Shown piece after piece: positions 1 to 64,000 of a stretch of 64,000 bases of DNA. The stretch is taken from assembly GCF_039654945.1 (NCBI RefSeq), contig NW_027361684.1, positions 16,740,001 through 16,804,000 of the forward strand. Reading direction: 5' to 3'. The stretch is from Dendrobates tinctorius (taxonomy: Eukaryota). Numbering within the stretch: the stretch's first letter is position 1; the number at the start of each line of letters is the position of its first letter. The notes below the pieces were generated by a model. It made no database searches. It saw only the letters and a list, made by a program, of their open reading frames with translations, and was not told the DNA's origin. The position numbers and the translations under genes were made by a program.

Positions 1-2247
1 AACAGATTTCAGTCTTCTAAGTGGAGATGTAGACTTCCAGAAGTTTATGGTACACTGCCGTTAGAGTCACAAAGTCCTAGTACCCAGCAACGTCCTGGAA
101 CTCAGAGCAATTAGTCTGTCCTTTCTACATTGGCAACTAGCTGTTGGGTCTCCCTGTTCGACAACTCCACTGCCACGGCTTATATCAACCATCAATGAGA
201 CACTGAGTCACCAAGTAATGGCAAAGATGTCACAAATTTTTGACTGGGCGAAACAATTTTTTTTGGCAATCTCAGTGATCCACATTCCGGGAGTAAACAA
301 CTGGGGAGTGGATTTTCTAAGTCACAAAGGACTAACCGCAGGAGAATGGTCCATGCATCCGATCAGATGCGCCTATAGTGGGACTCTCCAGTCGTTGACT
401 TGATAGCGTACAGAGATAACAGCAAAGTTCCTCAGTTTGTATCTAAAGTTCACAATTCCTTAGAGGTCGTCTTCAACACACTGGCAAATCCATGGTCCCA
501 ATTTTCTCTCTTTTATATGTTCTCTACTCTACCTTTGCTACCCAAGTTGTTCAAGAAGGTACAGTTAGAAGACATTCCCATCATCCACTTGGCCGAGAAG
601 ATCATGGTACGTGGAAAGTGGGTCTATCTCCTCGCCGACGTTCCATGGAAACGTCAAGATTGACAAGACCTATTTTCCCAGAGTAGAGACTTCTTATTGA
701 AATTATGTTTTTTTTCAAATAACAGCATGGATGTTGAAGCTGTAGTTCTAAATCCTAAGAATTTTCTCATCAAGTTGTGCAGACCATGACCAAGACACTG
801 AAGACATGCTAGTCTCGTATCTACAATAGTATCTGCTGAGGTCCCCCATGTTTTCTCTACAGTCTCTTCTCACATTCCTGTAGTCGGGTTTTGTGGCTTA
901 GAATTGGTCCAGTCTGTCATATTTTTAAGACTATCAGGCTTCAAAGTCTCAAATCAAGACTTTGTCAGGGTGTGGCCCACTGTTCCTCCTTACCAACCTC
1001 CTTTAGATCCATGGGACCTAAACTTGATGCTTATCTCCTTTTGAACCAATCCAGAACATTTCCCCACTCTGGCTTTCCTTGAATGCTGCGTTAGAGACTG
1101 TTATTACTTCCATTAGGGAAGTATGAGAAATGGCAGCTCTGTCCGACTGCTCTCCATTTCTGGTACTTCACCTGGACAAGGTGTTTTTTTGATTGGTAAC
1201 CTCTTTCCTTCAGAAGGTGGTTTATTCCTTCCATCTTAGCAAAGATCATTCTGCTGTTACTCTGACCTTCTAGTTCAGTGGAGAGATCCATACACTGTTT
1301 GGACTTGGTCAGAGACTTGGGCCACTACCTATCAGAGACAGCCTCTTTTAAATGTTCACATTCTTTGTCCTCACGGAAGGAGCTTGTTGAGGTCTCTTCT
1401 CTTCCTCTAAGGTGACCATTGCCTGCTGGATTTGAAATGCTATTCTGAAAGCTTTAAAAGTCAAGAACAAAGTGCACCCGAAGGGGGTTAAAGCTCATCC
1501 CACCCAGGCAGAAGGGGCTTCCTAGGCTGCCATCATCATCAACTTTTTAAGACTGATCCTTGGACTTCCGTTCACGATCTCAAAATTTTACACACTTTCG
1601 CCTCGGCCAATGCGAGTCTGGGCAGAAAGGTGCTACCGGAGGCATTTGCCTTACACATTTTTATACATATTTCCAGCCCTAGGGACTGCTTTGCGTCATG
1701 CCATGGTTTCCAATATCCCCCAATGAAGCATATGAGAAAAGGCTTTTTGGACTAACCGCATAATCTTTCTCGTAGCCTTCACTGAGGTACACACAGCACT
1801 AATCCTTTGGCCGGGGTCAGACTTGTGAGAAACTGATGAGTCTCACACGTCAATACCCGGCACTGGGATCGGAGCGTTCAGCTACATGTATTTCTATGCA
1901 GCTGAACGCTTCGGTCCAGAGTTCCGGCGGCAGTGCCGGGTATTGACATGCGAGACTCGTCCGAGTTTCTCGTAAGTCTGACCCCAGCCTTTGTCTTCTT
2001 GCTGCCTCTTATGGCATGTGTATTCGTGATTATGTTATGCTTCTGCCATTTGCCTATTGCTTTCTAAATAACTGAATGGTTTAATGCTAGTATGTGGGTG
2101 TAGTCTCCTGTGGAGGAGACTTTTTCTTCAGGTTGTAATTCTTAGCGTCAGCCTCTTGGTGGTGGCTGCAGTATACACCCATGGTTTTCGGTGTCCCCCA
2201 AAAAAGCTACAAGAAAGGGATTTTATGGTAAATCAAAAAAACAGTAT
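1..2247 (+). mobile_element. Degenerate 3' part of a DIRS1-like retrotransposon (RNase H, methyltransferase and tyrosine recombinase remnants, ICR, right terminus)
   Basis: Fragments IHIPGVNNWGVDFLS..GEWSMHP and WSQFSLFYMFSTLPLL match the intact DIRS pol at 8184-8700. YR-like remnants lie at ~1000-1640, ICR-like sequence at ~1680-1800, and a terminal-like motif (cccatggttttcggtgtccccc..gattttatggtaa) at ~2175-2247. Many stops and frameshifts. Confidence 0.85.
1809..1989. mobile_element. Palindromic MITE (PIF/Harbinger-like) inserted in the old DIRS
   Basis: Termini ggccggggtcagactt...aagtctgaccccagcc, self-complementary body, flanked by TTT/TTT. Confidence 0.8.
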
Positions 2248-2402
2248 TCCCCATTACTGAAACAGGATAGGACAGTTGGTCCTCATACACTGATGGTGGT
2301 GGGGAGGAGAGAAAAGAAGAGCTAGAGATAGGCAGACAGACATTATGCTGCAAGTTCTCCTGAAACAAAAGTTACACTTAATAAAAGCATAAAAACAGTC
2401 AC

Positions 2403-2545
2403 CTCTCCATATCCGTGGTATCTAAAGGCCTTACTTCATCTGATAGCGGTTTGTCAGGATCAGCAGATATCTGCTCATACTGATAGGCCTGCATCTTCTG
2501 AAACAGACGTAAAAGATTTTGCCTTCTCAGTCGAAGCTGGGTCCA
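2403..2545 (-). CDS. SUPT6H: SPT6 coding exon 10 (last in window; gene continues off the left edge)
   Basis: [47 protein letters not shown](R); AG/GT sites; phase consistent with the preceding exon. Confidence 0.95.
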
Positions 2546-2789
2546 CTATCGAGCAAAGAAAAATAAAAAACATTTTTAGAATTCTAGCAAAACATACACA
2601 GATCTGTAGGGAAAAAGCCTGAAATGGAGTAAAGGAAAGTATTAAGTATTCCTGATCAAAATGGAGAAATATGGCAATCGATCAGATAATTTGAGGTGAA
2701 CGAGGCACATCTAGAAATCTTTATCCTGGGCACAAAGAGAGAAGGTCCATCACTACAAAATTTTAGTTCACTTTAACCCATCTTCTTTA

Positions 2790-2927
<138 letters not shown>

Positions 2928-2997
2928 TCAAATCAAAGAGAACTGCGACATTTAAGTTCAAGTCCATTAGAAAGTTCCAATAATGGAGATCACATAC

Positions 2998-3114
2998 CTC
3001 AAAGTGTTGATTTCTCATAAAATTTAAAGCTTCTCTAATTTTCTGTATGGTGCTGGGTCCCTTGCGGCCGAAGTTGCTGCCAACTTGACCACGTTCCAAG
3101 TAATCACAGCTTTC
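2998..3114 (-). CDS. SUPT6H: SPT6 coding exon 8
   Basis: [39 protein letters not shown]; 117 nt; AG/GT. Confidence 0.96.
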
Positions 3115-4164
3115 CTGTGAATGTGAAAATGTTACCATGAGGACTTTCAAAGCGGGGCGGCTACACACTTACATTTCTGTAGTTTTGCAATTCTCTAGTT
3201 TATTAACACATTAAGTTATTAGTGTTGTGACAAATGAATTCAGAGTAAAAGTCAATTTCTATAGAAATTACTTCTGAGCCTGGATTACAAATCCACAAAT
3301 GTTATTTTACAAATGTAATTAAAAGAATAATACCTATTAGAGACTCACATATTAGGCTAAAGGGTTATTTTCATGGTCACAAATTAAAATTGAAAAGTAC
3401 TAGTAAAAATAGGCAACTATGCAATTTACTTGACATTAAAAATCCTCTCTCAGGAACAGGGGAATTTTTAATCATTGCTTACTACTCCTTGACTAGGTTA
3501 CCGGCCACCTTAGCAGTCCATCAGCGGTAGCTGGACTCCTGGGCAAGGAGCGCAGTATTAGAATTTACAAGCGATTTCCAATACAGCTTGTATGCGCTGC
3601 TGTGAAGCTGGTCCGATTGCAAGTCCTTGCCAGTTTCCGTACCACTGCACTCCTCTGATGCTGCAGAGGCAAAGTTGCTTCATATAAGTAGCATCTGAGA
3701 GGGTGCAGAGTTTTAGAGGGGTGGCAGGGCTACATTTCCGAACTGTCAATTTAACAGGAGCACGTCACCCCTCAGCAATTAGGAGGCAGGAAAGTGGTGT
3801 ACACCTGAACAGAAGTGATGAGACAACCTTGGTAAGGTCATAGCTGCTGTACCAATACAATGTGGATAGATGTGGTTACTGACTACAACGACAGGCAAAA
3901 GGCTTACAGTAATTAACCACTTTCCACCAAAAGGAGAATACATGAGTTCAGATAAGTTTTGCTGTTACAATTCTATCAATTCTATTTAAGTTATATAGAG
4001 CCATCATATTCCACAGCACTTTAGAAAAAATTATCTCTTGCCCCATTTATGCTCTGAAGTCTTGGAGGAAACCTGCATAAACAAGGGGACAACCTACAAA
4101 CTCCTTGCAGATATTGTCCTTGGAGGGATTTGCAACCAGGACACCAGTGCCATCTCTACATTGA

Positions 4165-4524
4165 GGCTATGTACCCACGTTAGAGTTTTTAAACGCTCAG
4201 GAAACTGATCCCCTTCCCAGAAAATGCGCGTTTTATTTCCACGCGTTTCCTGCGCTTTTTTTCCACAAAAGACGTGAGTTTTTTCCACGCGTTTTCTGGG
4301 AACATTGGAAAAGGCTAAAAACGCTCTGCAATGCGGAAATTAATGAGCATGCTGCGTTTTTAGCTGCTAAGCGATTCCTGAGCGTTTAAAAACACATGCA
4401 TTGGCACAAAAAGCCAAAAACGCATGCAATTTAATGTGAAGCTTCTTTTAAGCGTTTCTGCAGCGTCTGAGCCAGCACAAACGCTGAGGAAACGCTTAAA
4501 AAAACGCAACGTGGGCACACAGCC
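4165..4524. mobile_element. PIF/Harbinger-like MITE
   Basis: Imperfect TIR ggctatgtacccacgtt...aacgtgggcacacagcc with TGA/TGA flanks; ends about 26 bp from a SUPT6H donor site. Confidence 0.75.
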
Positions 4525-4550
4525 TGAATGTGCAACAATATTTATACTAC

Positions 4551-4652
4551 CTGCTGTGAGATAGTTGGTGTTGAAAATGCATTCCTGTAGATCCAGTCAG
4601 CCTCCTCCTCCAGTTCTTCATCTTCAGCAGCTTTAACAGGTATGGTCCGTAA
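4551..4652 (-). CDS. SUPT6H: SPT6 coding exon 7
   Basis: [34 protein letters not shown]; 102 nt; AG/GT. Confidence 0.96.
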
Positions 4653-4976
4653 CTGCAATTGTAATAACATCTTGCTGTTATGTCCACACTACTATTACAT
4701 TCTAATTGAGAATGATGGAATAACTTAAAAGTGATAATGGTTAATTGAATGACCTTTTGGTTTTTAAAAAACTAACTCAACATGTATGCATTTCATGCAG
4801 TGGGGAAAGCCTATGACTTCCTATCGTATCTGAATTCTGCTCAGTCTGTGTACTCTTGGTGCGCAGCCTTTTGAGCAATTAGGAAGGGTCTCAGGAATCA
4901 GACCCTCACTGACCTGCCGATATGTAAAGTATCTGCAGAAAGCATCAACGTTTAGTCACCCCTTTAAGCAATTTAC

Positions 4977-5247
4977 CTGGAATCTCTCGGGCAGATCTGT
5001 GGTCCGGATCTCATTGTCTTGGTCAGTTAAGTGACTGCTTTCAAGTTCACTTGGCTCATAGATTTCAAAGATGCTGCGTCGGCTCACACGCTTCTTAGCG
5101 GTTTTCTTGGGTCGGACACGAGCCTCTCCATCCGCCTCTTCATCCTCATATTCATACTCTTCCATTTCCTCATCATCTTCATTGTATTTTTCAAACTCTT
5201 CATAATCAAAATCTACACCAAAGATCTCCTGAGCTTCCTGCAAAGCA
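4977..5247 (-). CDS. SUPT6H: SPT6 coding exon 6
   Basis: [21 protein letters not shown]...[24 protein letters not shown]; AG/GT; phase 2 to 0. Confidence 0.97.
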
Positions 5248-5397
5248 CTGAAAGACAAGTATACTGCTAAGAGAAAATATTAATATGTCGAAAGGACCCA
5301 AAGCCATTCATCTTCACTGTATAAGCAAGGAACAGATTCTGATCAGTCATGGGTCGTTACTGCAGCTGCTCTGTTATTCCTATTATTCAGTTACTTA

Positions 5398-5562
<165 letters not shown>

Positions 5563-5566
5563 TTAC

Positions 5567-5759
5567 CAGATTCTTCATCCTCCTCCTCCTCTTCTTCGTC
5601 AGCGGCAATAACGGGCTGATCACCTGAATCATGTCGGTCGTCATCCTCACCATCCTGGAAAATTTCCTCAGCGATTGCTTCTTTTTCATGTTCCTCTTTT
5701 CCAGCATCCTCTTCTTCATCTTCATCATCTGACATTTTTTTCACTCGACGGAATTTTTG
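5567..5759 (-). CDS. SUPT6H: SPT6 coding exon 4
   Basis: [36 protein letters not shown]...EES; AG/GT. Confidence 0.96.
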
Positions 5760-6064
5760 CTGCATTGGAAAATGGCCGTATATAGTATAACAAGCTCTTA
5801 CATAGATATAAATCATGTTTTGCACTTGGGAAAAAAAAAAAAATGTAATGTGGCAAAACGGGTTGCCTCATGAAGGCCAGCCCTTCTCATAAGATAGCCA
5901 GCACCTTAAAAGCTCCAGCTGGTCGTAGAGGTCACTGTAGAAAAAATGAATGATTACATGCTGTCCATTCAGAAGACGCTCATATGTTCTAATATTAGAT
6001 ATAGAAGAGCGTAGCACAAACGAGAAAACCTAACGGGGCAATACAACCAAATAGATTCACTTAC

Positions 6065-6135
6065 ACGTTTCACTTTTACACCCAAGTTTTCTTCAATGAG
6101 ATCAAAGTCGTCATCTTCCAGTCTGTCATCAAAGG
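6065..6135 (-). CDS. SUPT6H: SPT6 coding exon 3
   Basis: [24 protein letters not shown]; 71 nt; AG/GT. Confidence 0.96.
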
Positions 6136-6240
6136 CTATAAGCATTGAGAAAAAATATATATATATATTGCAATGTTCCAGGATGAGGTTTGTACCGAGG
6201 ACTTTGTGCATCTCCCACTCCATCAACAACACACACTTAC

Positions 6241-6408
6241 TGCGCTTTCTGGTTTTGTGGCCAATTTCATCATCTGAGCCTCCAGACTCACTCCCAGCAT
6301 CCTGCTCCTCCTCCTCCTCTTCATCCTCATCCTCATCGTCATTGATAAAATCTTTTAAATTTCCTTGTTCATCCTGGTCATCTGGATTTTCGTCTTCCTC
6401 CTCTTCGT
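6241..6408 (-). CDS. SUPT6H: SPT6 coding exon 2 (acidic N-terminus)
   Basis: [25 protein letters not shown]...IGHKTRKR; 168 nt; AG/GT. Confidence 0.96.
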
Positions 6409-7007
6409 CTACACGGAGCAAAAAATGTAAATCATATTGTACGTGATTTGGGATAAATCTGCCCTCTTGCTGTATGAATAAGAAAAATAGTGATAATTGG
6501 TCATAAGCCAACCTATGCAGTCAAGACGGCATTGATCCAACATTACCGCCACTGACTGTAGGAATATTATTAATATCTTATCAAGTAACAAGTTCTGCTA
6601 AAAGGTGGCACAAAAAAGTTACAGTAAGAGAGGGGGTGGGTGGGTTTACAGGTAACTAAAGAGCATTTGCACGAAAAAAAAATTTAAAAAAAAAAGGAGA
6701 TTTTTGTGTACTCACCGTAAAATCTCTCTTAGCCTTTAATTGGGGGACACAGAACCGTGGGTGTTATGCTGCTGTCCACTAGGAGGCGACACTATGCATA
6801 ATCTGAAAAAGATTAACTTTGGCTCCTCCTCTGCAGTATACACCCCTGGACGGCGTCAGCCTTCTCCAGTTTTGTGCCAAAGCATTAGGAGGAACGTAAC
6901 CAAATAACATAACCATGCCTGTAAGAAGGCTACTATGTACGAGCTCAAAGAACAATATGAGAACTCAACCGTAAAACAACGGCCCATAAGGGCAACACGG
7001 TGGGAGC

Positions 7008-7106
7008 TGTGTCCCCCAATTAAAGGCTAAGAGAAAGAGATTTTACGGTGAGTACACAAAAATCTCCTTTACTCTGTCGCCTTATTGGGGGACACAGAAC
7101 CGTGGG
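7008..7106. repeat. DIRS internal complementary region (ICR)
   Basis: First half is the reverse complement of ~6696-6751 (one 4-bp indel). Second half is the reverse complement of ~12804-12839. Junction reads ctcc-TTT-actc. Confidence 0.93.
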
Positions 7107-7164
7107 ACGTCCCAAAGCAGTACCTGGGTGGGAAGCAATGGACGAATATTGTGCTAGCAGATCC

Positions 7165-8210
7165 CTAAATTTGGGGCACTGCCGCATGCAGAACCAGTCT
7201 ACCCAGGCTCGCATCCGCTGAGGACTGGGTATGAACACTGTAGTGTTTCGTAAACGTGTGTAGGCTGGTCCAAGTGGCCGCCTTACACACTTGTTGTGCC
7301 GAAGCCTGATGCCGAATGGCCCAGGAGGCCCCTACTGCCCTTGTAGAGTGTGCCGTGATACCGGCCGGAAGAGGGGAACTGTTAAGTCGGTAGGCCTCAT
7401 GTATGGTGGACTTGATCCACCTGGCAAGGGTAGCCTTGGAAGCCGGCAGCCCCTTGCGACTACCTTCCGGAAGAATGAAGAGGGAATCAGACTTCCGGAA
7501 AGGTGCAGTCCTGGACACGTAAATCCGCAATGCTCTGACGAGGTCAAGCGTATGCAGAGCCCTCTCCACTCTATGAACCGGAACCGGGCAAAGGGATGGC
7601 AGTGAAATCTCCTCATTGAGGTGAAAGTTGGACACAACCTTCGGAAGGAAGGATGGTACCGTGCGGAGAACCACCTTGTCCTGGTGAAAAGCTAGGAAAG
7701 GCCGTCTGCAGGAAAGTGCTGACAATTCCGACACTCTGCGTAACGAGGTGATCGCCACTAGAAAAACCACTTTCTGAGACAGAATGGAAAGTGGAACTCC
7801 TCTAAGAGGTTCGAAGGGTGGAGCTTGCAATGCTGTCAGGACCAGATTGAGGTCCCATGTATCCAGCGGACGTTTGTAGGGAGGAACCAATCGGGAAACT
7901 CCCTGGATGAAAGTCCTGACTTGCGGTTTAATAGCAATGCGCTTTTGAAAAAGGACTGAAAGCGCCGACACCTGACTCTTAAGCGAGCTTAAGGATAGCT
8001 TGGCGTCTAGGCCCGATTGAAGAAAACCTAGTACCTTCGGGAGGGAATAAGGGAGTGGGACTTGTCCATGAGATTCGCACCAAGAAAAGAAAGCTCTTCA
8101 GGTACGATAATAGAGCTTGGCGGAGGCAGGCTTCCTTGCCCTGATCATAGTTGCAATGACTGCCGGTGAAAAACCTGCCTGGGTTAGAATCCAGGTTTCA
8201 AGGGCCATGC
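7165..8210 (-). pseudogene. DIRS tyrosine recombinase, interrupted by an in-frame TGA at 8098-8100
   Basis: Motifs SLRRVSEL, AHSTR, AATW and FTKHY. ORFs 8098-8607 and 7165-7971 share one frame and read YYRT*RAFFSWC across the stop. Confidence 0.92.
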
Positions 8211-10060
8211 CGTCAAATTGAGAGCCCCTGAATTCTGGTGGAAAAACGGACCTTGGGACAGAAGGTCGTGACGGTCGGGTAGACGCCAGGGGACGTCTGC
8301 AGTAAGTTGAACGATGTCGACGTACCATGTACGTCTGGGCCAGTCTGGCGCGATGAGGATGGTTGGAACTCCCTCTTGCTTGATCTTCCTCACGACCCTG
8401 GAGATTAGGGGGAGGGGTGGAAAAATGTACAGGAGTCGGAACTGGGACCAGTCCTGGACCAGGGCATCCGCTCCGAGTGACCGCGGGTCGTGTGTCCTGG
8501 CCATGAAATTGGGGACCTTGGTATTGAGATGGGATGCCATTAGGTCCACCTCCGGGGTTCCCCAACGTTGACAGATCTGGTAAAAAATCTCGGGATGGAG
8601 AGACCACTCCCCCGAGTCCATTCCTTGCCTGCTAAGGAAGTCGGCTTCCCAGTTTTCTACACCCGGAATGTGGACCGCAGAAAGTAGCGACCTCGTGTCT
8701 TCTGCCCAGCGGAGGATATGCGCCACTTCTCTCATCGCCTGGGCGCTGCGGGTCCCGCCTTGGTGGTTCACGTATTCCACAGCCGTGGCATTGTCCGACT
8801 GTATCCGTATGTGCGAGGCTGCAAGCAAGTGATGAAAGGCTCTCAGTGCCAAGAGGATGGCCCTGATTTCCAGAATATTGATGGGCAATGTCACTTCCCT
8901 CGGTGACCACTTGCCTTGTGCCCTGTGATGTAGGTGCACCGCCCCCCAGCCTGTCAAGCTTGCATCGGTAGTCAGGATCTTCCATTGTCCTGAGAGAAAG
9001 GGCTTCCCTCGTGAAAGCGAGGTTGGTTTGAGCCACCAATGCAGGGACCTCCTGGTTGACGACGTCAACCTGAACTCCCTGTCGAGGGAGAAGGGATTCC
9101 TGTCCCAAGATCTGAGTATGGCTAGTTGAAGGACCCTGAGGTGAAACTGGGCAAATGGCACTGCCTCTATTGCTGCTGCCATCCGGCCGAGGACTATCAT
9201 GGCAAACCGGAGAGATCGAGGAGGACTGCGAAGGAGTGTACGAACTCCCAGACGGATGGCCAGTGTCTTGTCCATGGGAAGGAGCACCAGGCCCCTGGAG
9301 GTGTCGAATAACATTCCCAGGAATGTTAGAGTCTGACTTGGGATAGTCGACGATTTCTGTAGGTTGACTAGCCATCCCAGGCGACTCAGTGTGTCTATTG
9401 TGATTGAGACACTGACCTCGCAGTCTTTGAAAGTGGGAGACTTGATGAGGAGGTCGTCCAGGTACGGGATGACTAGAATGCCTCTTGAGTGCAGAACGTC
9501 CATGGTGGCCGCCATGACTTTGGTGAATGTTCTTGGAGCCGTGGCGAGTCCGAACGGAAGGGCGACAAACTGGTAGTGGTTTTGGTTGACCGCGAACCTG
9601 AGAAACCTTTGGTGGGCGGGGGCAATTGGTATGTGCAGATACGCATCCTGTATGTCTATGGAGGCAGGTATTCTCCCTGCTCCATGGATGCAATGATGGA
9701 CCGGAGGGACTCCATGCGGAAATGACGGACCCGTACGTAATTGTTGAGCTGTTTTAGGTCCAGTATGGGTCGGACGCTGCCTCCTTTCTTGGGGACTACG
9801 AACAGATTTGAGTAGAACCCTCGGAATCTCTCGTTCGCGGGAACCAGCACCACAACTCCTGCTTGAAGGAGAGAGGAGACCGCTTGGTGGAAAGCACGAG
9901 CCTTGTCTGGTAGTGTTGGAGGAATAGAGAGGAAGAACCGGTTCGGTGGAGCGGAAGTGAACTCTATCTTGTATCCGGAAGACACTATTTCCCTGACCCA
10001 CTTGTCTTCTGTAATAGGCAGCCAGACTTGCTGAAAGAGTAAAAGTCGGCAGCCTACTGG
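8184..10060 (-). pseudogene. DIRS pol (RT, RNase H, N6-adenine methyltransferase-like domain), frameshifted near 9660
   Basis: N-terminal part FYSNLFVVPKK..RPILDLK in ORF 9656-9985. It continues in another frame as SIDIQDAYLHIPI, LPFGL, YLDDLLI, then RNase H TTDASLTGWGA/SDN, then MT-like DLMAS...YIFPP. Confidence 0.93.
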
Positions 10061-10085
10061 TGGGGTGTCTTCCGGAGTTCGTGAG

Positions 10086-11634
10086 TCATGATGAAGCGAA
10101 GTTCTGAGGTTTTCCTCCCTTGGGTTTCGCTTGGCCTGCTTTCGACTGCCAAGACCTGTCCGGTCGCTGCTGCGTCCGTGGGTTGTCCCTGCGTGGAGAG
10201 CGGTTACGGTTTTGCGCTGGGCGCGAAACGGACCAGCCCGAGGAATTCCGAAAGGATCGGAATCGTGTCTGGTTTCTTCGTTTAAACGTGCGTTTCGGTT
10301 TTAGTTGAGGGAGAGAGGTACTCTTACCCCCAGTGGCATTGGCTATCATTGTGTCCAACTTTTCGCCGAAAAGTCTTCCAGTAAGATACGGAAGTCGCGT
10401 GAGGGACTTCTTTGAGGCCGCATCCGCTTTCCATTCTCGCAGCCAGAAGATGCGTCGGATCGTGATGGCATTTGATGCTATTCCCGCTACACCTCTGGCG
10501 GAATCCAGGGCTGCATGAATCATGTAGTCTGCTACCACTGCTATCTGGACCGCTTGGTCCGAGAGCTCAGGATTTGAAGCTTGAAGACCCTCCTGTAGTT
10601 TTTTGGCCCAAGCCAGGATGGCCTTGGCCGCCCACACTGAAGCAAACGCAGGGCCCAGAGAGGCGCCTGCCGCTTCGAAAATAGAACGAGCCATGCGTTC
10701 TACTTGCCGGTCTGCTGCGTCCCTGAGAGTTGAGCTATCTGGCAGAGAGAGTAAGGTCTGCGCTGCTAGCCTCGAAACTGGGGGGTCCACTTCAGGTGGA
10801 TCTGTCCATTGTTTGGTGTCTTTCTGTGGGAAGGGGTACTTCGCTTCCAAATATTTGCGATTAGCAAATTTTTTCTCAGGCTGCGCAAACTGTTTGGTAA
10901 GTATTTTCTCAAACTCATGGTGATTAGGGAAGACGTTAGGTGGTTTCTGAACACTTTCGAAGCAAATCCTATGTTCCGGGACTTCCGGGGCCGACTCTGG
11001 AATTTTTAGCACCCGATGGATGGCAGAGATTATGTCCTCAACTAGCGCTGTATTGCTAGGGGGAGAAGGTACCACGGACCTCTCCGTCTCATTATCTGAG
11101 TCGGAGTCACAGATGCCCTCCGAATCCTGTGCCTCGCTAAGGTGATCCCTGGAGGGCGACCTGGGGCGGGGGTCTTCTGTGATGGGGGATCTCTGTGACA
11201 GGAGACTGCCTAGGAGACCTGGAATGACGCTGTCTCTCCCTGGAGGGGGACGACCTTGTGCTATAGGATGACTCAGGTGATCGAGACCTGTGGGTCCGCT
11301 TACGTCTGTGAGAGTCGGAAGCAGCATGTTCCTGAGACAAGCTGTCCGTTTGCTGTGTAACGTCCATAGCCGGAGCCCGACTCTGCAGAGCTTGCAGCAA
11401 TGTGGCAGTTAGGTTGTCTATGGACTGTGTCATAGACTGTGACATCTGAGTTGCCCTTTCCGGCGTGGCCTGTGACACTGAAGCGTCAGTAGGGACTCCC
11501 TGTGGTTCTGACCCAGAGTTCTGGATGCAGTCCCGGCAGTGCGGATACGTGCTGCCACTAGGGAGCGTGGCTTTGCAGGCTGTGCAGAATGCATAGAAAC
11601 ATTCCTGCCTGGTTCTCTTCCTCGAGCCCGGCAT
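10086..11634 (-). pseudogene. DIRS ORF1 (gag-like) with N-terminal CxxC..CxxC motif, probably frameshifted near 11190
   Basis: ORF 11137-11634 (CTAC...HCRDC) overlaps ORF 10086-11327 (PPEVDPPV..DRQVE..RRIFWLREW..LFG), which resembles vertebrate DIRS ORF1; lies directly upstream of pol. Confidence 0.8.
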
Positions 11635-13088
11635 AGTGCACAGAGGCTGGCTATAAGGGATCGTACAAGGGTGGCTACGCAGAGGGAACCCACAGATAGC
11701 CTTATAGGAAGTATAGATTCACAGCTGAGTATGCGAACCCAGCTGTGAGCTTACCCCACCGGTGTGCCCCTAGGTCCAGCGCCGACAGATCCCAGTTCTG
11801 TGCCCCCCGGAGACTGCTGTGATGCTCCTCTCCTGGATCTCATCCAAAAAAAATGGCCACCGGGACTCTGAGGAGAGGGAGGAGGGGGCGGAGAGCTGAA
11901 AAGGGCGCGCGGGGCTGTGTAAAAACGCGCCCTTTCTGCCTCAATCCGCCCCTTCTATGACACTTCAGTGTGTCATTTTAGTCATCCGGGGGGCGGGCCG
12001 GGGAAAAGGCGGCGGCTTCGGCTAGGCCGAAGCCGCGGTCTAAATTTGAGGCCTGATGCCCAGGAGGGCTCCAGAGCGGCGCGGTAGTCCGGGGGGGGGG
12101 GGGGGGCGGATTTGTACCAAACCCCCCCAGAATGGTCGACTGGATAGCAGTGGGGGTAGCGGTTCCTGTATGGGGGGCCCCCGGAGCGCTATGGAGCCGC
12201 TGCTGCTGCAGAGACAGGGACGCAGAAAAGCCCTGTCTCTGCTGTGCCATCCAGTCCGCACCCTCCCCCCGGCCCCAACAGGATCCCTCAGCTGGTCTGG
12301 GGTCCCTGGAAGCTGCGGAATGCTGCCTGTACTCCAACCCTACCTGAGGCGTCTCAACCTAATGCCCCCTGCGGGGGATTAGGGAGGGTGCGTCTGTCAC
12401 CGTCAGGGGGTCTTCATCCTCTCCTCAACCTCAACCCAGAGCCCAAAGGGGTTGGGGAAGGAGGGGGGTCTCGACCTCGAACCAGGACCCGAGGAACTGG
12501 GGAGGGAGCGACATGGGAAATAGCCACCTCGACCTCAACCGGGTACCCCTAATGGGGGACCGAGGAGGGAGCCATGCCGGGAGTCTCGCTGGAGACCCGC
12601 TTTTCTTCATCTGTAGTCCTTTGGAAAAAAATCCAGGAAAAAGACAGAGTAAAAAAAAAATTCTTAGGTGTGCCTCCTGCGACACTAAGCAAAAACTGGA
12701 GAAGGCTGACGCCGTCCAGGGGTGTATACTGCAGAGGAGGAGCCAAAGTTAATCTTTTTCAGATTATGCATAGTGTCGCCTCCTAGTGGACAGCAGCATA
12801 ACACCCACGGTTCTGTGTCCCCCAATAAGGCGACAGAGTAAAAGCAGACACACATTCCCACATTGGCAAACATGAAAAAAACAGGTAAACACATTAAACA
12901 GACCACTAAAAAGGTGCAATAGAACAAAGACAACCAAAGAAAGGCTAAAAACAACAAAGGCAAGACAAAAAAGAGGAACAAATCCAATAATGAATTGGGC
13001 TCCAAAAATGCTTTGACTGATAGAGCTATGGATTAGTCAGAAATGAGAAGAGCAGGGTGGAGGCAATGTTATAACCGATACTACTTAC

Positions 13089-55966: not shown

Positions 55967-56034
55967 ATGCCCATCATCTCCGCGGTGCTGCTGGCGCTGC
56001 TGCTCCTGGCGGTGTGCGCCCTGCTGCTAGGACG
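55967..56034 (+). CDS. BLTP2: First coding exon of bridge-like lipid transfer protein 2 (KIAA0100/hobbit orthologue)
   Basis: Kozak gcaccATG; MPIISAVLLALLLLAVCALLLGR|gtgggt resembles the human N-terminus as I recall it ([23 protein letters not shown]). CpG-rich context and synteny downstream of SDF2. Exon 2 not found in the window. Confidence 0.82.
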
Positions 56035-56119
56035 GTGGGTACCGGGGGCAGAGCGGGGCCTGGGGCTGCCGGGAGGAGCTGTCAGACGTGGCGCTGAGCG
56101 GTGACTGCTGCTGTCTCTC

Positions 56120-56935
56120 TGACCCCTGACGGGGGGCATCGGCACTGCTCCGGGCACAGCCCCCGGCGGGGGCATCGGCACTGCTCCGGGCACAGCCCCC
56201 GACGGGGGGCATCGGCACTGCTCCGGGCACAGCCCCTGACGGGGGGCATCGGCACTGCTCCGGGCACAGCCCCCGGCGGGGGCATCGGCACTGCTCCGGG
56301 CACAGCCCCTGACGGGGGGCATCGGCACTGCTCCGGGCACAGCCCCTGACGGGGGGCATCGGCACTGCTCCGGGCACAGCCCCCGGCGGGGGCATCGGCA
56401 CTGCTCCGGGCACAGCCCCTGACGGGGGGCATCGGCACTGCTCCGGGCACAGCCCCTGACGGGGGGCATCGGCACTGCTCCGGGCACAGCCCCTGACGGG
56501 GGGCATCGGCACTGCTCCGGGCACAGCCCCTGACGGGGGGCATCGGCACTGCTCCGGGCACAGCCCCTGACGGGGGGCATCGGCACTGCTCCGGGCACAG
56601 CCCCTGACGGGGGGCATCAGTACTGCTCCGAGCACAGCCCCTGACGGGGGCATCGGCACTGCTCCGGGCACAGCCCCTGACGGGGGGCATCGGCACTGCT
56701 CCGGGCACAGCCCCTGACGGGGGGCATCAGTACTGCTCCGAGCACAGCCCCTGACGGGGGCATCGGCACTGCTCCGGGCACAGCCCCTGACGGGGGCATC
56801 GGTACTGCTCCGGGCACAGCCCCCGGCGGGGGCATCGGCACTGCTCCGGGCACAGCCCCTGACTGGGGCATCGGCACTGCTCCGGGCACAGCCCCTGACG
56901 GGGGCATCGGCACTGCTCCGGGCACAGCCCCTGAC
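56120..56935. repeat. 35-37-bp GC-rich minisatellite (~22 units)
   Basis: ggcatcggcactgctccgggcacagcccctgacgggg. Confidence 0.97.
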
Positions 56936-56964
56936 AGGAGGATGCCTCATACATGCAGCTTACA

Positions 56965-57420
56965 GCCCATATGTACAGCGTGTATCACCCCTATATAACA
57001 CATATCCCCCTATACAGCGTGTGTCACCCCTATATAACACACATCCCCCTATACAGCGTGTCACCCCTATATAACACACATCCCCCTATACAGCGTGTGT
57101 CACCCCTATATAACACACATCCCCCTATACAGCGTGTGTCACCCCTATATAACACACATCCCCCTATACATCGTGTGTCACCCCTATATAACACACATCC
57201 CCCTATACAGCGTGTGTCACCCCTATATAACACATATCCCCCTATACAGCGTGTCACCCCTATATAACACCTATGCCCCATACAGCGTGTGTCCCCTATT
57301 TAAAACCTACCCCATATATAGCGTGTGTCCCCCATATGTAACATATCCCCCTATACAGCGTGTCCACCCTATATAACACCTACCCCATATACATGTATCC
57401 CCCCATATGTACCATGGATA
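56965..57420. repeat. 37-39-bp minisatellite decaying to the right
   Basis: cagcgtgtgtcacccctatataacacacatccccctata. Confidence 0.93.
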
Positions 57421-57658
57421 CCCATGTATAACACCTACCCCCACATAAAACTTGTATCGCCATCATATGTAACACTTGTCCTCCTCCTCCCCTATTTAGT
57501 GTGTACCCCCCATATTCCCATCACATCTCACTATATGTATCTCCTATCCCGCTGTATACTTATTTTTGAGATATGTATGTTCTCCAGTATAAACCTCACA
57601 CATCCCGCTCTACATATTGCCTGTAACCCAGTATATATAGGTGATGTTTATAATGGGT

Positions 57659-58018
57659 ACTAGATGGTGGCCCGATTCTATCGCATCGGGTATTCTAGAG
57701 TCTCTGTTAAAATAAAAAATAGTTATATACTCACCTCCCAACGGCCCCCGGACTCTTTTTCTCTCCTCTCCATGCTCCCGTCATCTTCCGGTTCCAGTAA
57801 TGCTTTGCGCGAAACACCGCTGATGACGTCACACTCTCGCGAGAGTGACGTCATCTTCAGCCCTTCTCGCTAAGCATTACTGGAACCGGAAGATACCGGG
57901 CGCGTGGTGAGAGGAGGGACAGAGTCTGGTGGTCGTCGAAAGGTGAGTATATAACTATTTTTTATTTTAACAGAGACTCTAAAATACCCGATGCGATAGA
58001 ATCGGGCCACCATCTAGT
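57659..58018. mobile_element. ~360-bp near-perfect palindromic element (unclassified MITE)
   Basis: actagatggtggcccgattctatcgcatcgggtatt...aatacccgatgcgatagaatcgggccaccatctagt; centre tgacgtcacactctcgcgagagtgacgtca. Confidence 0.85.
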
Positions 58019-58788
58019 GTATTATACTCCTGTTACACCCGGAGCTGCTGTCACTGTTCTGCTGTAACCTAATGTATTGTACTCCAGTTAGTCCCAGAGC
58101 TGCAGTCACTTCTGCTTTTACCTAATGTATTGTAGTCCAGTTACACCCAGAGCTGCAGTCACCATTCTGCTCTTACCTAATGTATTATACTCCTGTTACA
58201 GCCAGAGCTGCAGTCACCGTTCTTCTCTTACCTAATGTATTGTACGCAAGTTACACCCAGAGCTGCAGTCACTGTTCTACTGTTACCTAATGTATTGTAC
58301 TCCAGTTACACCCAGATCTGCAGTCACTGTTCTGCTGTTACCTACTGTATTGTACTCCAGTTAGTCCCAGAGCTGCAGTCACTTCTGCTTTTACCTAATG
58401 TATTGTAGTCCAGTTACACCCAGAGCTGCAGTCACCATTCTGCTCTTACCTAATGTATTATACTCCTGTTACAGCCAGAGCTGCAGTCACCGTTCTGCTC
58501 TTACCAAATGTATTATACTCCTGTTACAGCCAGAGCTGCAGTCACTGTTCAGATCTTACCTAATGTATTGTATGCAAGTTACACCCAGAGCTGCAGTCAC
58601 TTTTCTGCTCTTACCTAATGTATTGTAGTCCAGTTACACCCAGAGCTGCAGTCACCATTCTGCTCTTACCTAATGTATTATACTCCTGTTACAGCCAGAG
58701 CTGCAGTCACTGTTCAGATCTTACCTAATGTATTGTATGCAAGTTACACCCAGAGCTGCAGTCACTTTTCTGCTCTTACCTAATGTAT
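58018..58788. repeat. ~55-bp minisatellite (~14 units)
   Basis: gtattgtactccagttacacccagagctgcagtcactgttctgctgttacctaat. Confidence 0.95.
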
Positions 58789-58995
58789 ATGTACAGGACT
58801 GTGCCTGTGTAATGAGAGACGCAGCAGTGATGCCTTTAATGGCTGTAATGTGCCTGTACAATAAGCGATGTGGCCGTGTTGCAGCGACGACTAAGCGACT
58901 GTTGCTGATTGGTCACGGCCTAACTGCCGCGACCAATCAGCGACGCAGGATTTCGGTTACAGACAGACATGATAAGACAATTATATATATATATA

Positions 58996-60216
58996 CACTC
59001 ACTGGCCACTTTATTAGGTACACCATGCTAGTAAGGGGTTGGACCCCCTTTTGCCTTCAGAACTGCCTCAATTATTCGTGGCAGAGATTCAACAAGGTGC
59101 TGGAAGCATTCCTCAGAGATTTTGGACCATATTGACATGATGGCATCACACAGTTGGCGCAGATTTGTCGGCTGCACATCCCTGATGCGAATCTCCCGTT
59201 CCACCACATCCCAAAGATGCTCTATTGGATTGAGATCTGGTGACTGAGGAGGCCATTTGAGTACAGTAAACTCATTGTCATGTTCAAGAAACCAATCTGA
59301 GATGATTCGAGCTTTATGACATGGCGCATTATCCTGCTGAAAGTAGCCATCAGATGTTGGGTACATTGTGGTCATAAAGGGATGGACATGGTCAGCAACA
59401 ATACTCAGGTAGGCTGTGGCGTTGCAACGATGCTCAATTGGTACCAAGGGGCCCAAAGAGTGCCAAGAAAAAATTCCCCACACCATGACACCACCACCAC
59501 CAGCCTGAACCGTTGATACAAGGCAGGATGGATCCATGCTTTCATGTTGTTTACGCCAAATTCTGACCCTACCATCCGAATGTCGCAGCAGAAATCGAGA
59601 CTCATCAGACCAGGCAACGTTTTTCCAATCTTCTACTGTCCAATTTCGATGAGCTTGTGCAAATTGTAGCCTCAGTTTCCTGTTCTTAGCTGAGAGGAGT
59701 GGTACCCAGTGTGGTCTTCTGCTGCTGTAGCCCATCTGCCTCAAAGTTCGACGCACTGTGCGTTCAGAGATGCTCTTCTGCCTACCTTGGTTGTAACGGG
59801 TGGCAATTTGAGTCACTGTTGCCTTTCTATCAGCTCGAACCAGTCTGCCCATTCTCCTCTGACCTCTGGCATCAACAAGGCATTTCCGGCCACAGAACTG
59901 CCGCTCACTGGATTTTTTTTCTTTTTCGGACCATTCTCTGTAAACCCTAGAGATGGTTGTGCGTGAAAATCCCAGTAGATCAGCAGTTTCTGAAATACTC
60001 AGACCAGCCCTTCTGGCACCAACAATCATGCCACGTTCAAAGGCACTCAAATCACCTTTCTTCCCCATACTGATGCTCGGTTTGAACTGCAGGAGATTGT
60101 CTTGACCATGTCTACATGCCTAAATGCACTGAGTTGCCGCCATGTGATTGGCTGATTAGAAATTAAGTCTTAACACACAGTTGGACAGGTGTACCTAATA
60201 AAGTGGCCAGTGAGTG
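58996..60216 (-). mobile_element. Intact Tc1/mariner transposon, DD36E (Incomer-type), 1221 bp
   Basis: Identical 29-bp TIRs cactcactggccactttattaggtacacc, TA flanks, one full transposase ORF. Confidence 0.95.
59028..60068 (-). CDS. DD36E transposase, 346 aa, uninterrupted
   Basis: Paired-like HTH N-terminus; [25 protein letters not shown]; 36 residues counted between the second D and the E. Confidence 0.95.
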
Positions 60217-60715
60217 TAGATGGTTCTTATTGTGCTGTGTGCAGGCCTCCCGTCCCACTTTGTTATCCGCCATGCTCGGGTGCTAGCGGAGTGTCTTTGG
60301 TGTGCTCGAAAAAACATGTTACAGCCCCCACGGCTGTTAGACAGCAGCAACACCTGCAGGGACGGCCTGTTTGTTATGTGATCACTGCATATGTTGCGGC
60401 TGGCTAACAGCCGGGATACAGGCAGCCACGGGGACTCTAACATATTTTTGAGCACCTGAGCGTACCCGGATAACACCTCACCATAGCTCTCTCACCTGTG
60501 TACATCGCCCGTCCCGCTGTACACACGTCACCCACCTTGCTTTATACATATTAGTTACCCCCATATGTGTCACCCACGCCCCGTCCTCTCAATTATTTTC
60601 CCCTTTCCCTCGGTGTCACCTGGCGGAGGTAGAAGTGGACAGCAGTTTCTGACAAGCCCACAGCCAGTTTTCCATTTTCCCGTGTTCTTCACCTTGTGCA
60701 GAGACTGCAGGCGTT

Positions 60716-61823
60716 TTGGGCTGTGGGTATGGCTGCACCTTTGTGTACCGCGGGTCCACCCTGTGCCTCACACAATGCTGGGCTGTGGGTATGGGTGCAC
60801 CTCTGTGTACCGGGGTCCACCCTGTGCCTCACACAATGCTGGGCTGTGGGTATGGCTGCACCTTTGTGTACCGCGGGTCCACCCTGTGCCTCACACAATG
60901 CTGGGCTGTGGGTATGGCTGCACCTTTGTGTACCGCGGGTCCACCCTGTGCCTCACACAATGCTGGGCTGCTGATAAGGGTGCACCTCTGTGTACCGGGG
61001 TCCGCCCTGTGCCTCACACAATGCTGGGCTGTGGGTATGGGTGCACCTCTGTACCGCGGGTCCACCCTGTGCCTCACACAATGCTGGGCTGCTGATAAGG
61101 GTGCACCTCTGTGTACCGGGGTCCTCCCTGTGCCTCACACAATGCTGGGCTGTGGGTATGGGTGCACCTCTGTACCGCGGGTCCACCCTGTGCCTCACAC
61201 AATGCTGGGCTGCTGATAAGGGTGCACCTCTGTGTACCGGGGTCCTCCCTGTGCCTCACACAATGCTGGGCTGTGGGTATGGGTGCACCTCTGTACCGCG
61301 GGTCCACCCTGTGCCTCACACAATGCTCGGCTGTGGATATGGATGCACCTCTGTGTACCGGAGTCCACCCTGTGCCTCACACAATGCTGGGCTGTGGGTA
61401 TGGGTGCACCTCTGTACCGCAGGTCCACCCTGTGCCTCACACAATGCTGGGCTGTGGATATGGATGCACCTCTGTGTACCGGAGTCCACCCTGTGCCTCA
61501 CACAATGCTGGGCTGTGGGTATGGGTGCACCTCTGTACCGCGGGTCCACCCTGTGCCTCACACAATGCTGGGCTGTGGATATGGATGCACCTCTGTGTAC
61601 CGGGGTCCACCCTGTGCCTCACACAATGCTGGGCTGTGGATATGGATGCACCTCTGTGTACCGGGGACCACCCTGTGCCTCACACAATGCTGGGCTGTGG
61701 GTATGGGTGCGCCTCTGTGTACCGCGGGTGCACCCTGAGCCTCACACAATGCTGGGCTGTGGATATGGGTGCACCTCTGTGTACCGTGGGTGCACCCTGA
61801 GCCTCACACAATGCTGGGCTGTG
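60716..61823. repeat. 60-62-bp minisatellite (~18 units) with a 121-bp dimeric higher-order repeat
   Basis: gggctgtgggtatgg..gcacct..gtacc..gggtccaccctgtgcctcacacaatgct; near-identical ORF-track entries recur every 121 bp. Confidence 0.96.
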
Positions 61824-62581
61824 CTCCTCATGTTGACACAAGGCCTTTCTCTGGGTCACCGGTGCTGCGCACACAGGACAGATCACGGCACAGTCCGCAG
61901 CACTTTCTCTGCTTCTTCACCATTAGTTTATGTTCACACTGAGTTTTTTATGTGGATTTTGAAATGGATCGGCTTCAATATCAAAGTGTATCATAAACAC
62001 CAGTGTGAACAAAGCCGTGTAGGGACGCCGTGGTCAGTCGCGTCCTGAATCCGCCGTGTGAAGCAGACACTGTCCGCATTATGGCAGTTGGGTGTGTTTT
62101 ATGTGGAAAAGCTGCGGCATGTCAGAGAAAAGTGTCATGGACCTGAGTGGTCCGGAGGAGCCCCCCGGCCAGCGTCTCCCCACTCCTCACTGAGTGTATA
62201 GGAAGAGATCTGTCAGTCTGAGGCGCAGGATAGTGGGAAGCTGCAGAGGACGTCATCGGACCCCTCCAGTCCCCGGTCACATCTTCAAACCTTTTTTCTG
62301 ATTATTTTTTTATCCCCCGATGGGCCACTTTTATCCATGTTACAAAATATAGCAGCAGGTCAGATGTCGGACGGCCGCTCCATGCATTCTCTATAGGTCT
62401 GCCAGAAAAAGCAAAGCGCAGCCCTATAGGAGATGAGTGGAGCGGCCGTCCAGCGTGCGCAGTGCCCCTCCATTCTAAAGGGGGTGTAAGCTCCCTGTGC
62501 TGCCGATCGGTGCAGGTTACAGAGGTCGGCCCTCCACTGATCAACAAGTTATCATCACCAATCCCATGGATAGGTGATCAC

Positions 62582-62853
62582 TAGTGATGAGCGAGTATAC
62601 TCGTTGCTCGGGTGGTCTCCGAGTATTTTGGCGTGCTCGGAGATTTCGTTTTCGGCGTCTCAGCTGCATAATTTGTGGCTGCTAGACATCTTGAATACAT
62701 GTGGGGATTCCCTAACAAACAGGCATTCCACACATGTATATTCAGCCTGTCTACAAGTCGCAATACATGCAGCTGAGACAACGAAATCTAAACCTCCGAG
62801 CACGCCAAAATACTCGGAGACCACCCGAGCAACGAGTATACCCGCTCATCACT
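62582..62853. mobile_element. hAT-like palindromic MITE
   Basis: tagtgatgagcgagtatactcgttgctcggg...cccgagcaacgagtatacccgctcatcacta; 8-bp TSD gtgatca(c/t). Confidence 0.85.
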
Positions 62854-64000
62854 AGTGATCATTTGTTTTCACTGAACAACCTCTCTAATGTTTCAAGTTT
62901 TGGCCGGGGAGGTCCACCCTTGTAGTGTCTATGGCGGTCCCTTTAGTACCTAAGAGGTGTTCCCTCTTCAACGTTCATTCACAGTGATGGCTCCTTCCCT
63001 TACCCCTATCACTCCAATTGTTGGAGTACACGGCCCTTCTTTTTCTTTGGAGGTACAGCAATGCCACTCTCACTGCCTCAATGATAAAAACAGGCCCTCA
63101 ACTTCCCTTCCCCAGCAGTCGCAGCAGTCTCCTGCACTCTCCCAGTATTCTAGCAGACTCCCTAGTAGTCACAGCAGTTACTTCCAGATCCCCAGAAATC
63201 ACAGTATCCCCTCTATCTTCACAGTAATCTCAGAAGCCCCCCTACATCTGTGGTTGTCACTGCCTCGGCCCCTATTTTGTGTGCATTCGTAGCGGTACGT
63301 CATCCCACGTCCCTAGCAGACACAGATGGACTCGCAGCTCTCTCTCCTGGTAGTCACATGGCTAATGTCAGTGACAACCAAGGAGCCAGGCCCACTTGTT
63401 AGGGCTGATTTTGTCAGTAGCCAGGACCCCCTGGCCCAGTAATGTGTCAGGAGTGCGGAGGTTATCGGTGGGAATCGCCCTGCTCTGCGCGTAGCAGAAA
63501 TAAAAAAGTGGTTACATTGTGTGTGAGTTGGTGGATTCCACGTGTGTGCGCGCTGTCGTCACACCGCTTCCATTGTAATGCTTTGTATGGCCGCCTGACG
63601 CCCCGCGCACTTGACATGTACTTCTTACCGCGGTAGATGGATGTGCGGATCCTAAAACTCCGATACACTGGACACTGAATTTGCAGCTTACGTTGTTTTT
63701 TTTTGTTTTTTTTGTTTCCTTATTTTTTATAGAGTCCGCCTAAAGGCAATCTGTCAGCACAAAGTGACCGTTCTGATTCTGACCCAGCACTGGCTGCTCC
63801 TTTCCACTTGTTTTCCATCTTTCTCTGCCCTCCTCTTACTTCATTGACATAGATGGATTTACTGGAGGCAGCGAAAGGAAACCATGCGGAGGGAAGGCGC
63901 AGTGAATTCCTACGGCAAACCAAGCGTTCACTCAGCGCCTCTACTTGGTTTGATCTTTTCTTTTTTTGTGTGGACAGGATCCCTTAATTTTTTTTTATCA

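Follow-up and report, generated by a model that had tools for sequence, protein, structure and literature searches.

A probable, recently inserted Incomer (DD36E/IC) transposon of a high-copy subfamily downstream of a BLTP2-like exon

We analyzed a 64-kb stretch of Dendrobates tinctorius DNA (hereafter, the window), in which the exons surrounding the transposon described below were scanned individually. A minus-strand exon at ~6.0-6.5 kb matched the acidic N-terminus of SPT6 (SUPT6H), and a plus-strand exon at 37.6-37.9 kb matched a MIR domain; together with exons at ~30.0-30.2 and 42.2-42.5 kb, the latter constitutes an SDF2-like gene. Further downstream lies the putative first coding exon of a BLTP2-like gene (Table 1), the peptide of which presumably resembles the N-terminus of human BLTP2. 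We take the human gene order to be SUPT6H-SDF2-BLTP2, which is the order in the window. A motif scan of positions 56030-64000, of low power because its motifs were modelled on the human protein, found no second exon of the BLTP2-like gene. The transposon was originally predicted to lie in the first intron of BLTP2, and this placement is supported by its position downstream of the BLTP2-like exon 1, in a window that also holds SDF2 and SUPT6H. It is plausible that the element lies within intron 1 of this gene, in antisense orientation and ~2.96 kb from the donor site.

The surroundings of the genes are rich in repeats. A GC-rich minisatellite with a 36-bp unit (56027-56935; at least 12 units, 94% matches) starts essentially at the exon 1 donor, and further minisatellites were observed at 56974-57443, 58014-58794 (55-bp unit) and 60717-61823 (61-bp unit). 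Tandem repeats thus make up most of the intron on either side of the element. The immediate flanks of the element (58795-58990 and 60225-60354) are low- to mid-copy repeats, for which contigs of the same species had a depth of 50-600 compared with 2.5 for unique sequence, and the copies of the left-flank repeat are ~8% diverged. An inverted repeat flanking the element, hinted at by an odd joint (58982/60262) in contigs of sequencing run X1, was not supported. Upstream of the BLTP2-like exon 1, at a distance of less than 1 kb, two arrays of short AT-rich units (53.2-53.75 and 54.4-55.05 kb) form an inverted pair with arms of ~500 nt that are 75-86% complementary and ~700 nt apart; their outer flanks (52.7-53.1 and 55.1-55.4 kb) appear to be mirrored as well, and the pair may be a foldback-type element. 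A run of N is present at ~52.2-52.4 kb. Just upstream of exon 1 of the SDF2-like gene (~30.0 kb), a very GC-rich (68%) tandem array at 28.0-29.5 kb has an observed/expected CpG ratio of 1.56 and is possibly either a promoter region that SUPT6H and SDF2 share or a satellite resembling a CpG island.

Other mobile elements were also observed. A DIRS-like retrotransposon that contains long ORFs occupies 7165-11634 on the minus strand (Table 1). Three frameshifted Tc1 remnants of the DD34E type lie on the plus strand at 20.8-21.7, 41.0-41.9 and 49.8-50.4 kb; the second D is separated from the E by 34 residues in the portion at 21.3-21.7 kb of the first, and the remnant at 41-42 kb is within the second intron of the SDF2-like gene.

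Table 1. Positions of the features of the transposon, the BLTP2-like exon and the DIRS-like frames, numbered from the first letter of the window
Feature	Positions	Strand	Details
Transposon unit	58996-60216		1221 bp; ORF on the minus strand
Left TA target-site copy	58994-58995		final unit of a (TA)n run
Right TA target-site copy	60217-60218		
TIR, 3' end of transposase gene	58996-59024	+	outward AATAAA at 59010-59015 (minus strand), soon after the stop codon
TIR, 5' end of transposase gene	60188-60216	-	AATAAA on the plus strand at 60197-60202
Transposase ORF	59028-60068	-	346 aa + stop
First helix-turn-helix (HTH_23)	59925-60047	-	aa 8-48; Pfam
Second helix-turn-helix (HTH_Tnp_Tc3_2)	59643-59858	-	aa 71-142; Pfam
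Catalytic domain (DDE_3)	59184-59618	-	aa 151-295; Pfam
Catalytic D155	59604-59606	-	
Catalytic D246	59331-59333	-	
Catalytic E283	59220-59222	-	
Codon 121, TGG (W)	59706-59708	-	interdomain linker, ..RRPH-W-VPLL..
Codon 332, ATA (I)	59073-59075	-	C-terminal motif, ..MPRRIEAV..
5' untranslated/subterminal region, TIR to ATG	60069-60187	-	presumed promoter
Putative first coding exon, BLTP2-like gene	55967-56038	+	24 aa, hydrophobic N-terminus; Kozak-like ATG at 55967; GT donor at 56039
DIRS-like ORF	10086-11327	-	413 aa
DIRS-like ORF	8184-10001	-	605 aa; reverse-transcriptase/RNase H-like by eye
DIRS-like ORF	7165-7971	-	268 aa; weak Phage_integrase/tyrosine-recombinase match, E 0.003

The two terminal inverted repeats (TIRs) of the transposon are reverse complements over exactly 29 bp with 100% identity, and diverge beyond this length. 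When the 29-mer was searched for with up to 3 mismatches, these two sites were the only ones in the window, and none were obtained in 100 shuffles; a second Incomer copy or fragment was likewise not found in the 64-kb window. Because the left TA belongs to a (TA)n run, the TA flanks are consistent with a target-site duplication and carry little weight alone. The 346 codons of the transposase are free of stop codons and frameshifts, and the Pfam scores were 1.6e-19 for the Tc3-type helix-turn-helix (PF01498) and 1.8e-13 for the DDE_3-type catalytic domain (PF13358). A candidate GRPR-like motif (..CGRKC..) and candidate basic linker/NLS stretches were seen by eye. There are 90 residues between D155 and D246, and 36 between D246 and E283. 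Each TIR carries an outward AATAAA, of which the one on the transposase strand is 13 bases past the stop codon. The length, identical TIRs, TA flanks and unbroken ORF stated in the original prediction were accordingly all confirmed, as was the contrast between the spacing of 36 in this element and that of 34 in the decayed Tc1 near 21 kb.

We compared these features with the published description of the Incomer (DD36E/IC) family, according to which the elements are ~1.2 kb long and have one ORF of ~346 aa, a DD36E triad, TIRs of 22-32 bp and a TA duplication (PMC6875036). The frog Incomers in Table 1 of that study are 1194-1225 bp long, encode 346 aa and carry TIRs of 28-29 bp, and the type element from Rhinella marina (TMIC01Rrhma in its Table S1) has 1225 bp, 346 aa and 29/29 TIRs beginning with CACTC (PMC6875036). 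A total of 5475 copies was reported for R. marina (Sang et al. 2019, PMC6875036). In its length, ORF, TIRs, CACTC ends, TA flanks and spacing, the element in the window matches this description, which bears out its earlier assignment to Incomer. It shares with the R. marina type element the protein length, the DD36E signature, 29-bp TIRs starting with CACTC, the TA duplication and membership in a high-copy family; their DDE domains are identical at 149 of 153 residues (4 differ), and contigs with the ends and subterminal sequence of the R. marina entry show ~97% DNA identity to this copy. The two differ in length (1221 versus 1225 bp), at position 8 of both TIRs (T in this copy, C in the R. 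marina element), at four sites in the subterminal stretch 60169-60177 and in protein changes that include R121W, Q173K, G254R, M296R, T315S, M329L and R332I, the last of which is private to this copy.

The elements of the DD34E/Tc1 group (Sleeping Beauty, Frog Prince, Passport, ZB) belong to the same superfamily and have the same domain order, TA target and conserved PLL linker core, the last described for SB and ZB (PMC9777934). However, their spacing is 34, and their TIRs are usually much longer, for example 180-300 bp in SB and ZB (PMC9777934). The spacing of 36 in our element differs from the 34 residues that define DD34E/Tc1 sensu stricto, and protein identity to the DD34E remnants of the window was only 32-39%, compared with 149/153 to the R. 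marina DDE domain. In an alignment of word-search matches, the D-90-D-36-E arrangement was present in 30 of 47 full-length homologues. On the basis of these sequence comparisons, the transposase would fall in the IC clade, distinct from DD34E/Tc1; a placement outside the Incomer family is very unlikely because of the near-identity to the type element.

To characterize the copy within its species, reads were examined as assembled contigs of four runs over positions 58795-60716, in which the outermost ~20 bases of either end of the element were not scorable. No direct sign of mobility was seen: none of the joints listed for these contigs bypassed 58996-60216, although contigs cannot reveal the absence of an insertion. 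One run (X1) covers the unique right flank (60402-60588) at a depth of 2.5 with 0 differences, and because of this identity we assigned X1 to the same species as the window. The element unitigs of X1 reached depths of 2000-4000 each (3000-13000 summed per bin) and showed 0-1 differences per piece from this copy. The depth of the element is ~1000 times that of the unique flank, which suggests about a thousand copies as an order of magnitude, with the provisos that summed contig depth is not itself a copy number and that the ratio would not reflect copy number if X1 were an RNA library. Position 59074 is the sole position of the element at which all X1 contigs differ from the window; positions 59035 and 59708 are polymorphic in X1, and the window has the majority letter at both. 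This corresponds to one private difference in ~1160 assessable bases (~0.1%). As the dominant X1 sequence differs at a single position, the copy is very young and belongs to a high-copy subfamily.

Taken together, we consider it highly probable (roughly 0.9) that the element is a recently inserted full-length Incomer (DD36E/IC) copy of the Tc1/mariner type, belonging to a species-specific high-copy subfamily. As alternatives, a domesticated transposase gene or an assembly artefact would have nothing but the intact ORF in their favor. Domestication is at odds with the perfect TIRs, the TA flanks and the large number of near-identical copies, and the element was recovered independently in runs from 10 studies; we regard both explanations as extremely improbable. 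The element was also present in one RNA-labelled run of another organism, although its presence there is no proof of transcription.

We further examined how this subfamily is related to copies elsewhere. The exact 346-aa protein was absent from a collection of 15 billion proteins, and the closest protein (P0121) was 96.8% identical. It is encoded on at least 10 short metagenome contigs, each of which contains a gap-free 1221-bp element with 97.5-97.7% DNA identity and TA flanks at a different insertion site. More generally, the relatives found elsewhere were 97.0-97.7% identical at the DNA level, gap-free and TA-flanked at other sites; many of the metagenome-borne insertion sites are of the TATATA type. 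In two organisms, B and D, the element occurs at very high depth with 16-17 fixed differences from this copy in addition to the divergent stretch 60169-60177, and with no flank of this site. There are 15 sites at which B and D differ from this copy or from the majority in its species, and more distant contigs (L001 and L002) agree there with B and D, which places the origin of these ~15 changes on the lineage of the subfamily in this species. Nine of them are non-synonymous and six synonymous, which are too few to decide on constraint.

These results bear on the original prediction of a recent invasion. The copy itself is indeed recent, but the invasion is called into question by the ~15 substitutions that the subfamily has derived relative to its nearest relatives. 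Judging from the sequences compared, a master lineage that had accumulated ~1.2% of changes before its burst is explained by residence and evolution within the host lineage no less well than by a newly arrived element. The alternative, namely that a very recent horizontal transfer brought the family into this genome, draws on similarity across distant hosts. The 90%-identity clusters of two proteins (P0001 and P0002) contain proteins of the distantly related teleosts Pimephales, Cyprinodon, Fundulus, Sinocyclocheilus, Xyrichtys and Pampus. Elements of the teleost Incomer cluster B (Pimephales promelas, Fundulus heteroclitus, Cyprinodon variegatus) have the same architecture in another host class, and the closest named fish proteins show 92-95% amino acid identity. 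The ~97% DNA identity of the R. marina element points in the same direction, and repeated horizontal transfer has been inferred within the same cluster (PMC6875036). However, the 15 changes that preceded the burst need time within the host lineage, and if organisms B and D are close relatives of this species, as they may be, vertical descent with continued activity suffices. A very recent transfer seems rather unlikely.

A youthful copy might nevertheless be a fixed and silenced relic that looks intact only because it is young, in a species in which the family is no longer mobile. The observed/expected CpG ratio of the element (0.41) is low compared with that of the window (0.67), and several changes of the subfamily are CpG losses, including the replacement of C by T at position 8 of both TIRs; such depletion fits methylation of the family. 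Some metagenome Incomer copies (among L004, L005, L007 and L008) have lost the position-8 CpG in one TIR only, indicating that this position decays recurrently, and two independent hits at position 8 in the master lineage are plausible. On the other hand, a single private difference in the assessable bases indicates an insertion that is very recent on an evolutionary scale, and silencing is compatible with recent activity rather than exclusive of it. Silencing with loss of mobility is thus a possible explanation, albeit one we hold only tentatively, beside that of a recently mobile subfamily.

Two substitutions bear on whether the protein of this copy works. Residue 121, directly before the PLL core of the interdomain linker, is R (CGG) in 98% of the 47 full-length homologues and W (TGG) here. 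W121 is the majority form in this species, accounting for 92% of the depth at 59708 in X1, and R121 (G at 59708) accounts for 482 of 6271 (~8%). Residue 332 is R in 85% of the 47 homologues and I here; all contigs of the same species and of the relatives compared with them read AGA (R332), the R. marina element also has R332, and the fish copies retain both R121 and R332. The element had been described as bearing no visible lesion, and as having the only such transposon ORF in the window. The first statement holds with respect to stop codons and frameshifts, but needs qualification because of R121W and R332I, which affect conserved arginines; as for the second, the DIRS-like element also has long, unbroken frames, and the Incomer ORF is thus not unique among the mobile elements of the window in this respect. 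As W121 and I332 replace conserved arginines, the transposase may be weak or dead.

We accordingly weighed the possibility that this copy is autonomous and currently active, its own 346-aa protein being a working transposase. The unbroken ORF with all domains and the catalytic triad, the perfect TIRs and the close agreement with the dominant sequence of the species favor this possibility, and the predominance of W121 among very many copies indicates that a lineage bearing W121 did amplify. However, Tc1/mariner-type transposases act in trans, and the abundance of W121 copies is therefore no proof of a working W121 protein; the amplification may have occurred in trans, with the R121 minority as a possible source of activity. 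In addition, R332I is a private change in the conserved ..PRR.. motif, and the 9:6 ratio of non-synonymous to synonymous changes is not clearly indicative of constraint. Autonomous activity of this particular copy is hence doubtful. With respect to the subfamily as a whole, it might be that W121 transposases are catalytically competent despite the lost linker arginine, or that the R121 minority supplied, in trans, all of the activity behind the burst; we give this proposal a low probability. If it is true, the subfamily would represent either a naturally active vertebrate DD36E transposase or an ORF-intact but dependent subfamily that outgrew its helper.

Elements of the Tc1/mariner type move by an established cut-and-paste mechanism, which this copy would be expected to share. 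The transposase would bind the 29-bp TIRs through its two N-terminal helix-turn-helix domains, and the DDE center (D155, D246 and E283) would excise the element and join it into a TA dinucleotide, the target TA being duplicated on both sides upon insertion. This copy would have landed in a TA-rich stretch of the putative intron 1 of the BLTP2-like gene. Because its TIRs are perfect, any functional Incomer transposase present in the cell should be able to mobilize it in trans, whatever the state of its own protein.

The element is real but ordinary, being one of very many near-identical copies of a known family. A study from 2019 had already reported the family and its frog hosts, together with its abundance of copies in a toad, its pattern of horizontal transfer and its possible current activity (PMC6875036). 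What is mildly new is that a subfamily specific to this species bears R121W, a change at a linker arginine that is nearly invariant. The main use of the finding is in annotation, namely of a young Incomer in the putative intron 1 of the BLTP2-like gene, antisense to it and with an AATAAA that reads in the same direction as the gene. To our knowledge, naturally active Tc1-like transposases are rare among vertebrates, and an Incomer copy proven to be active would, if this is true, be a modest gain for gene-transfer tools and for the study of transposon bursts in amphibians.
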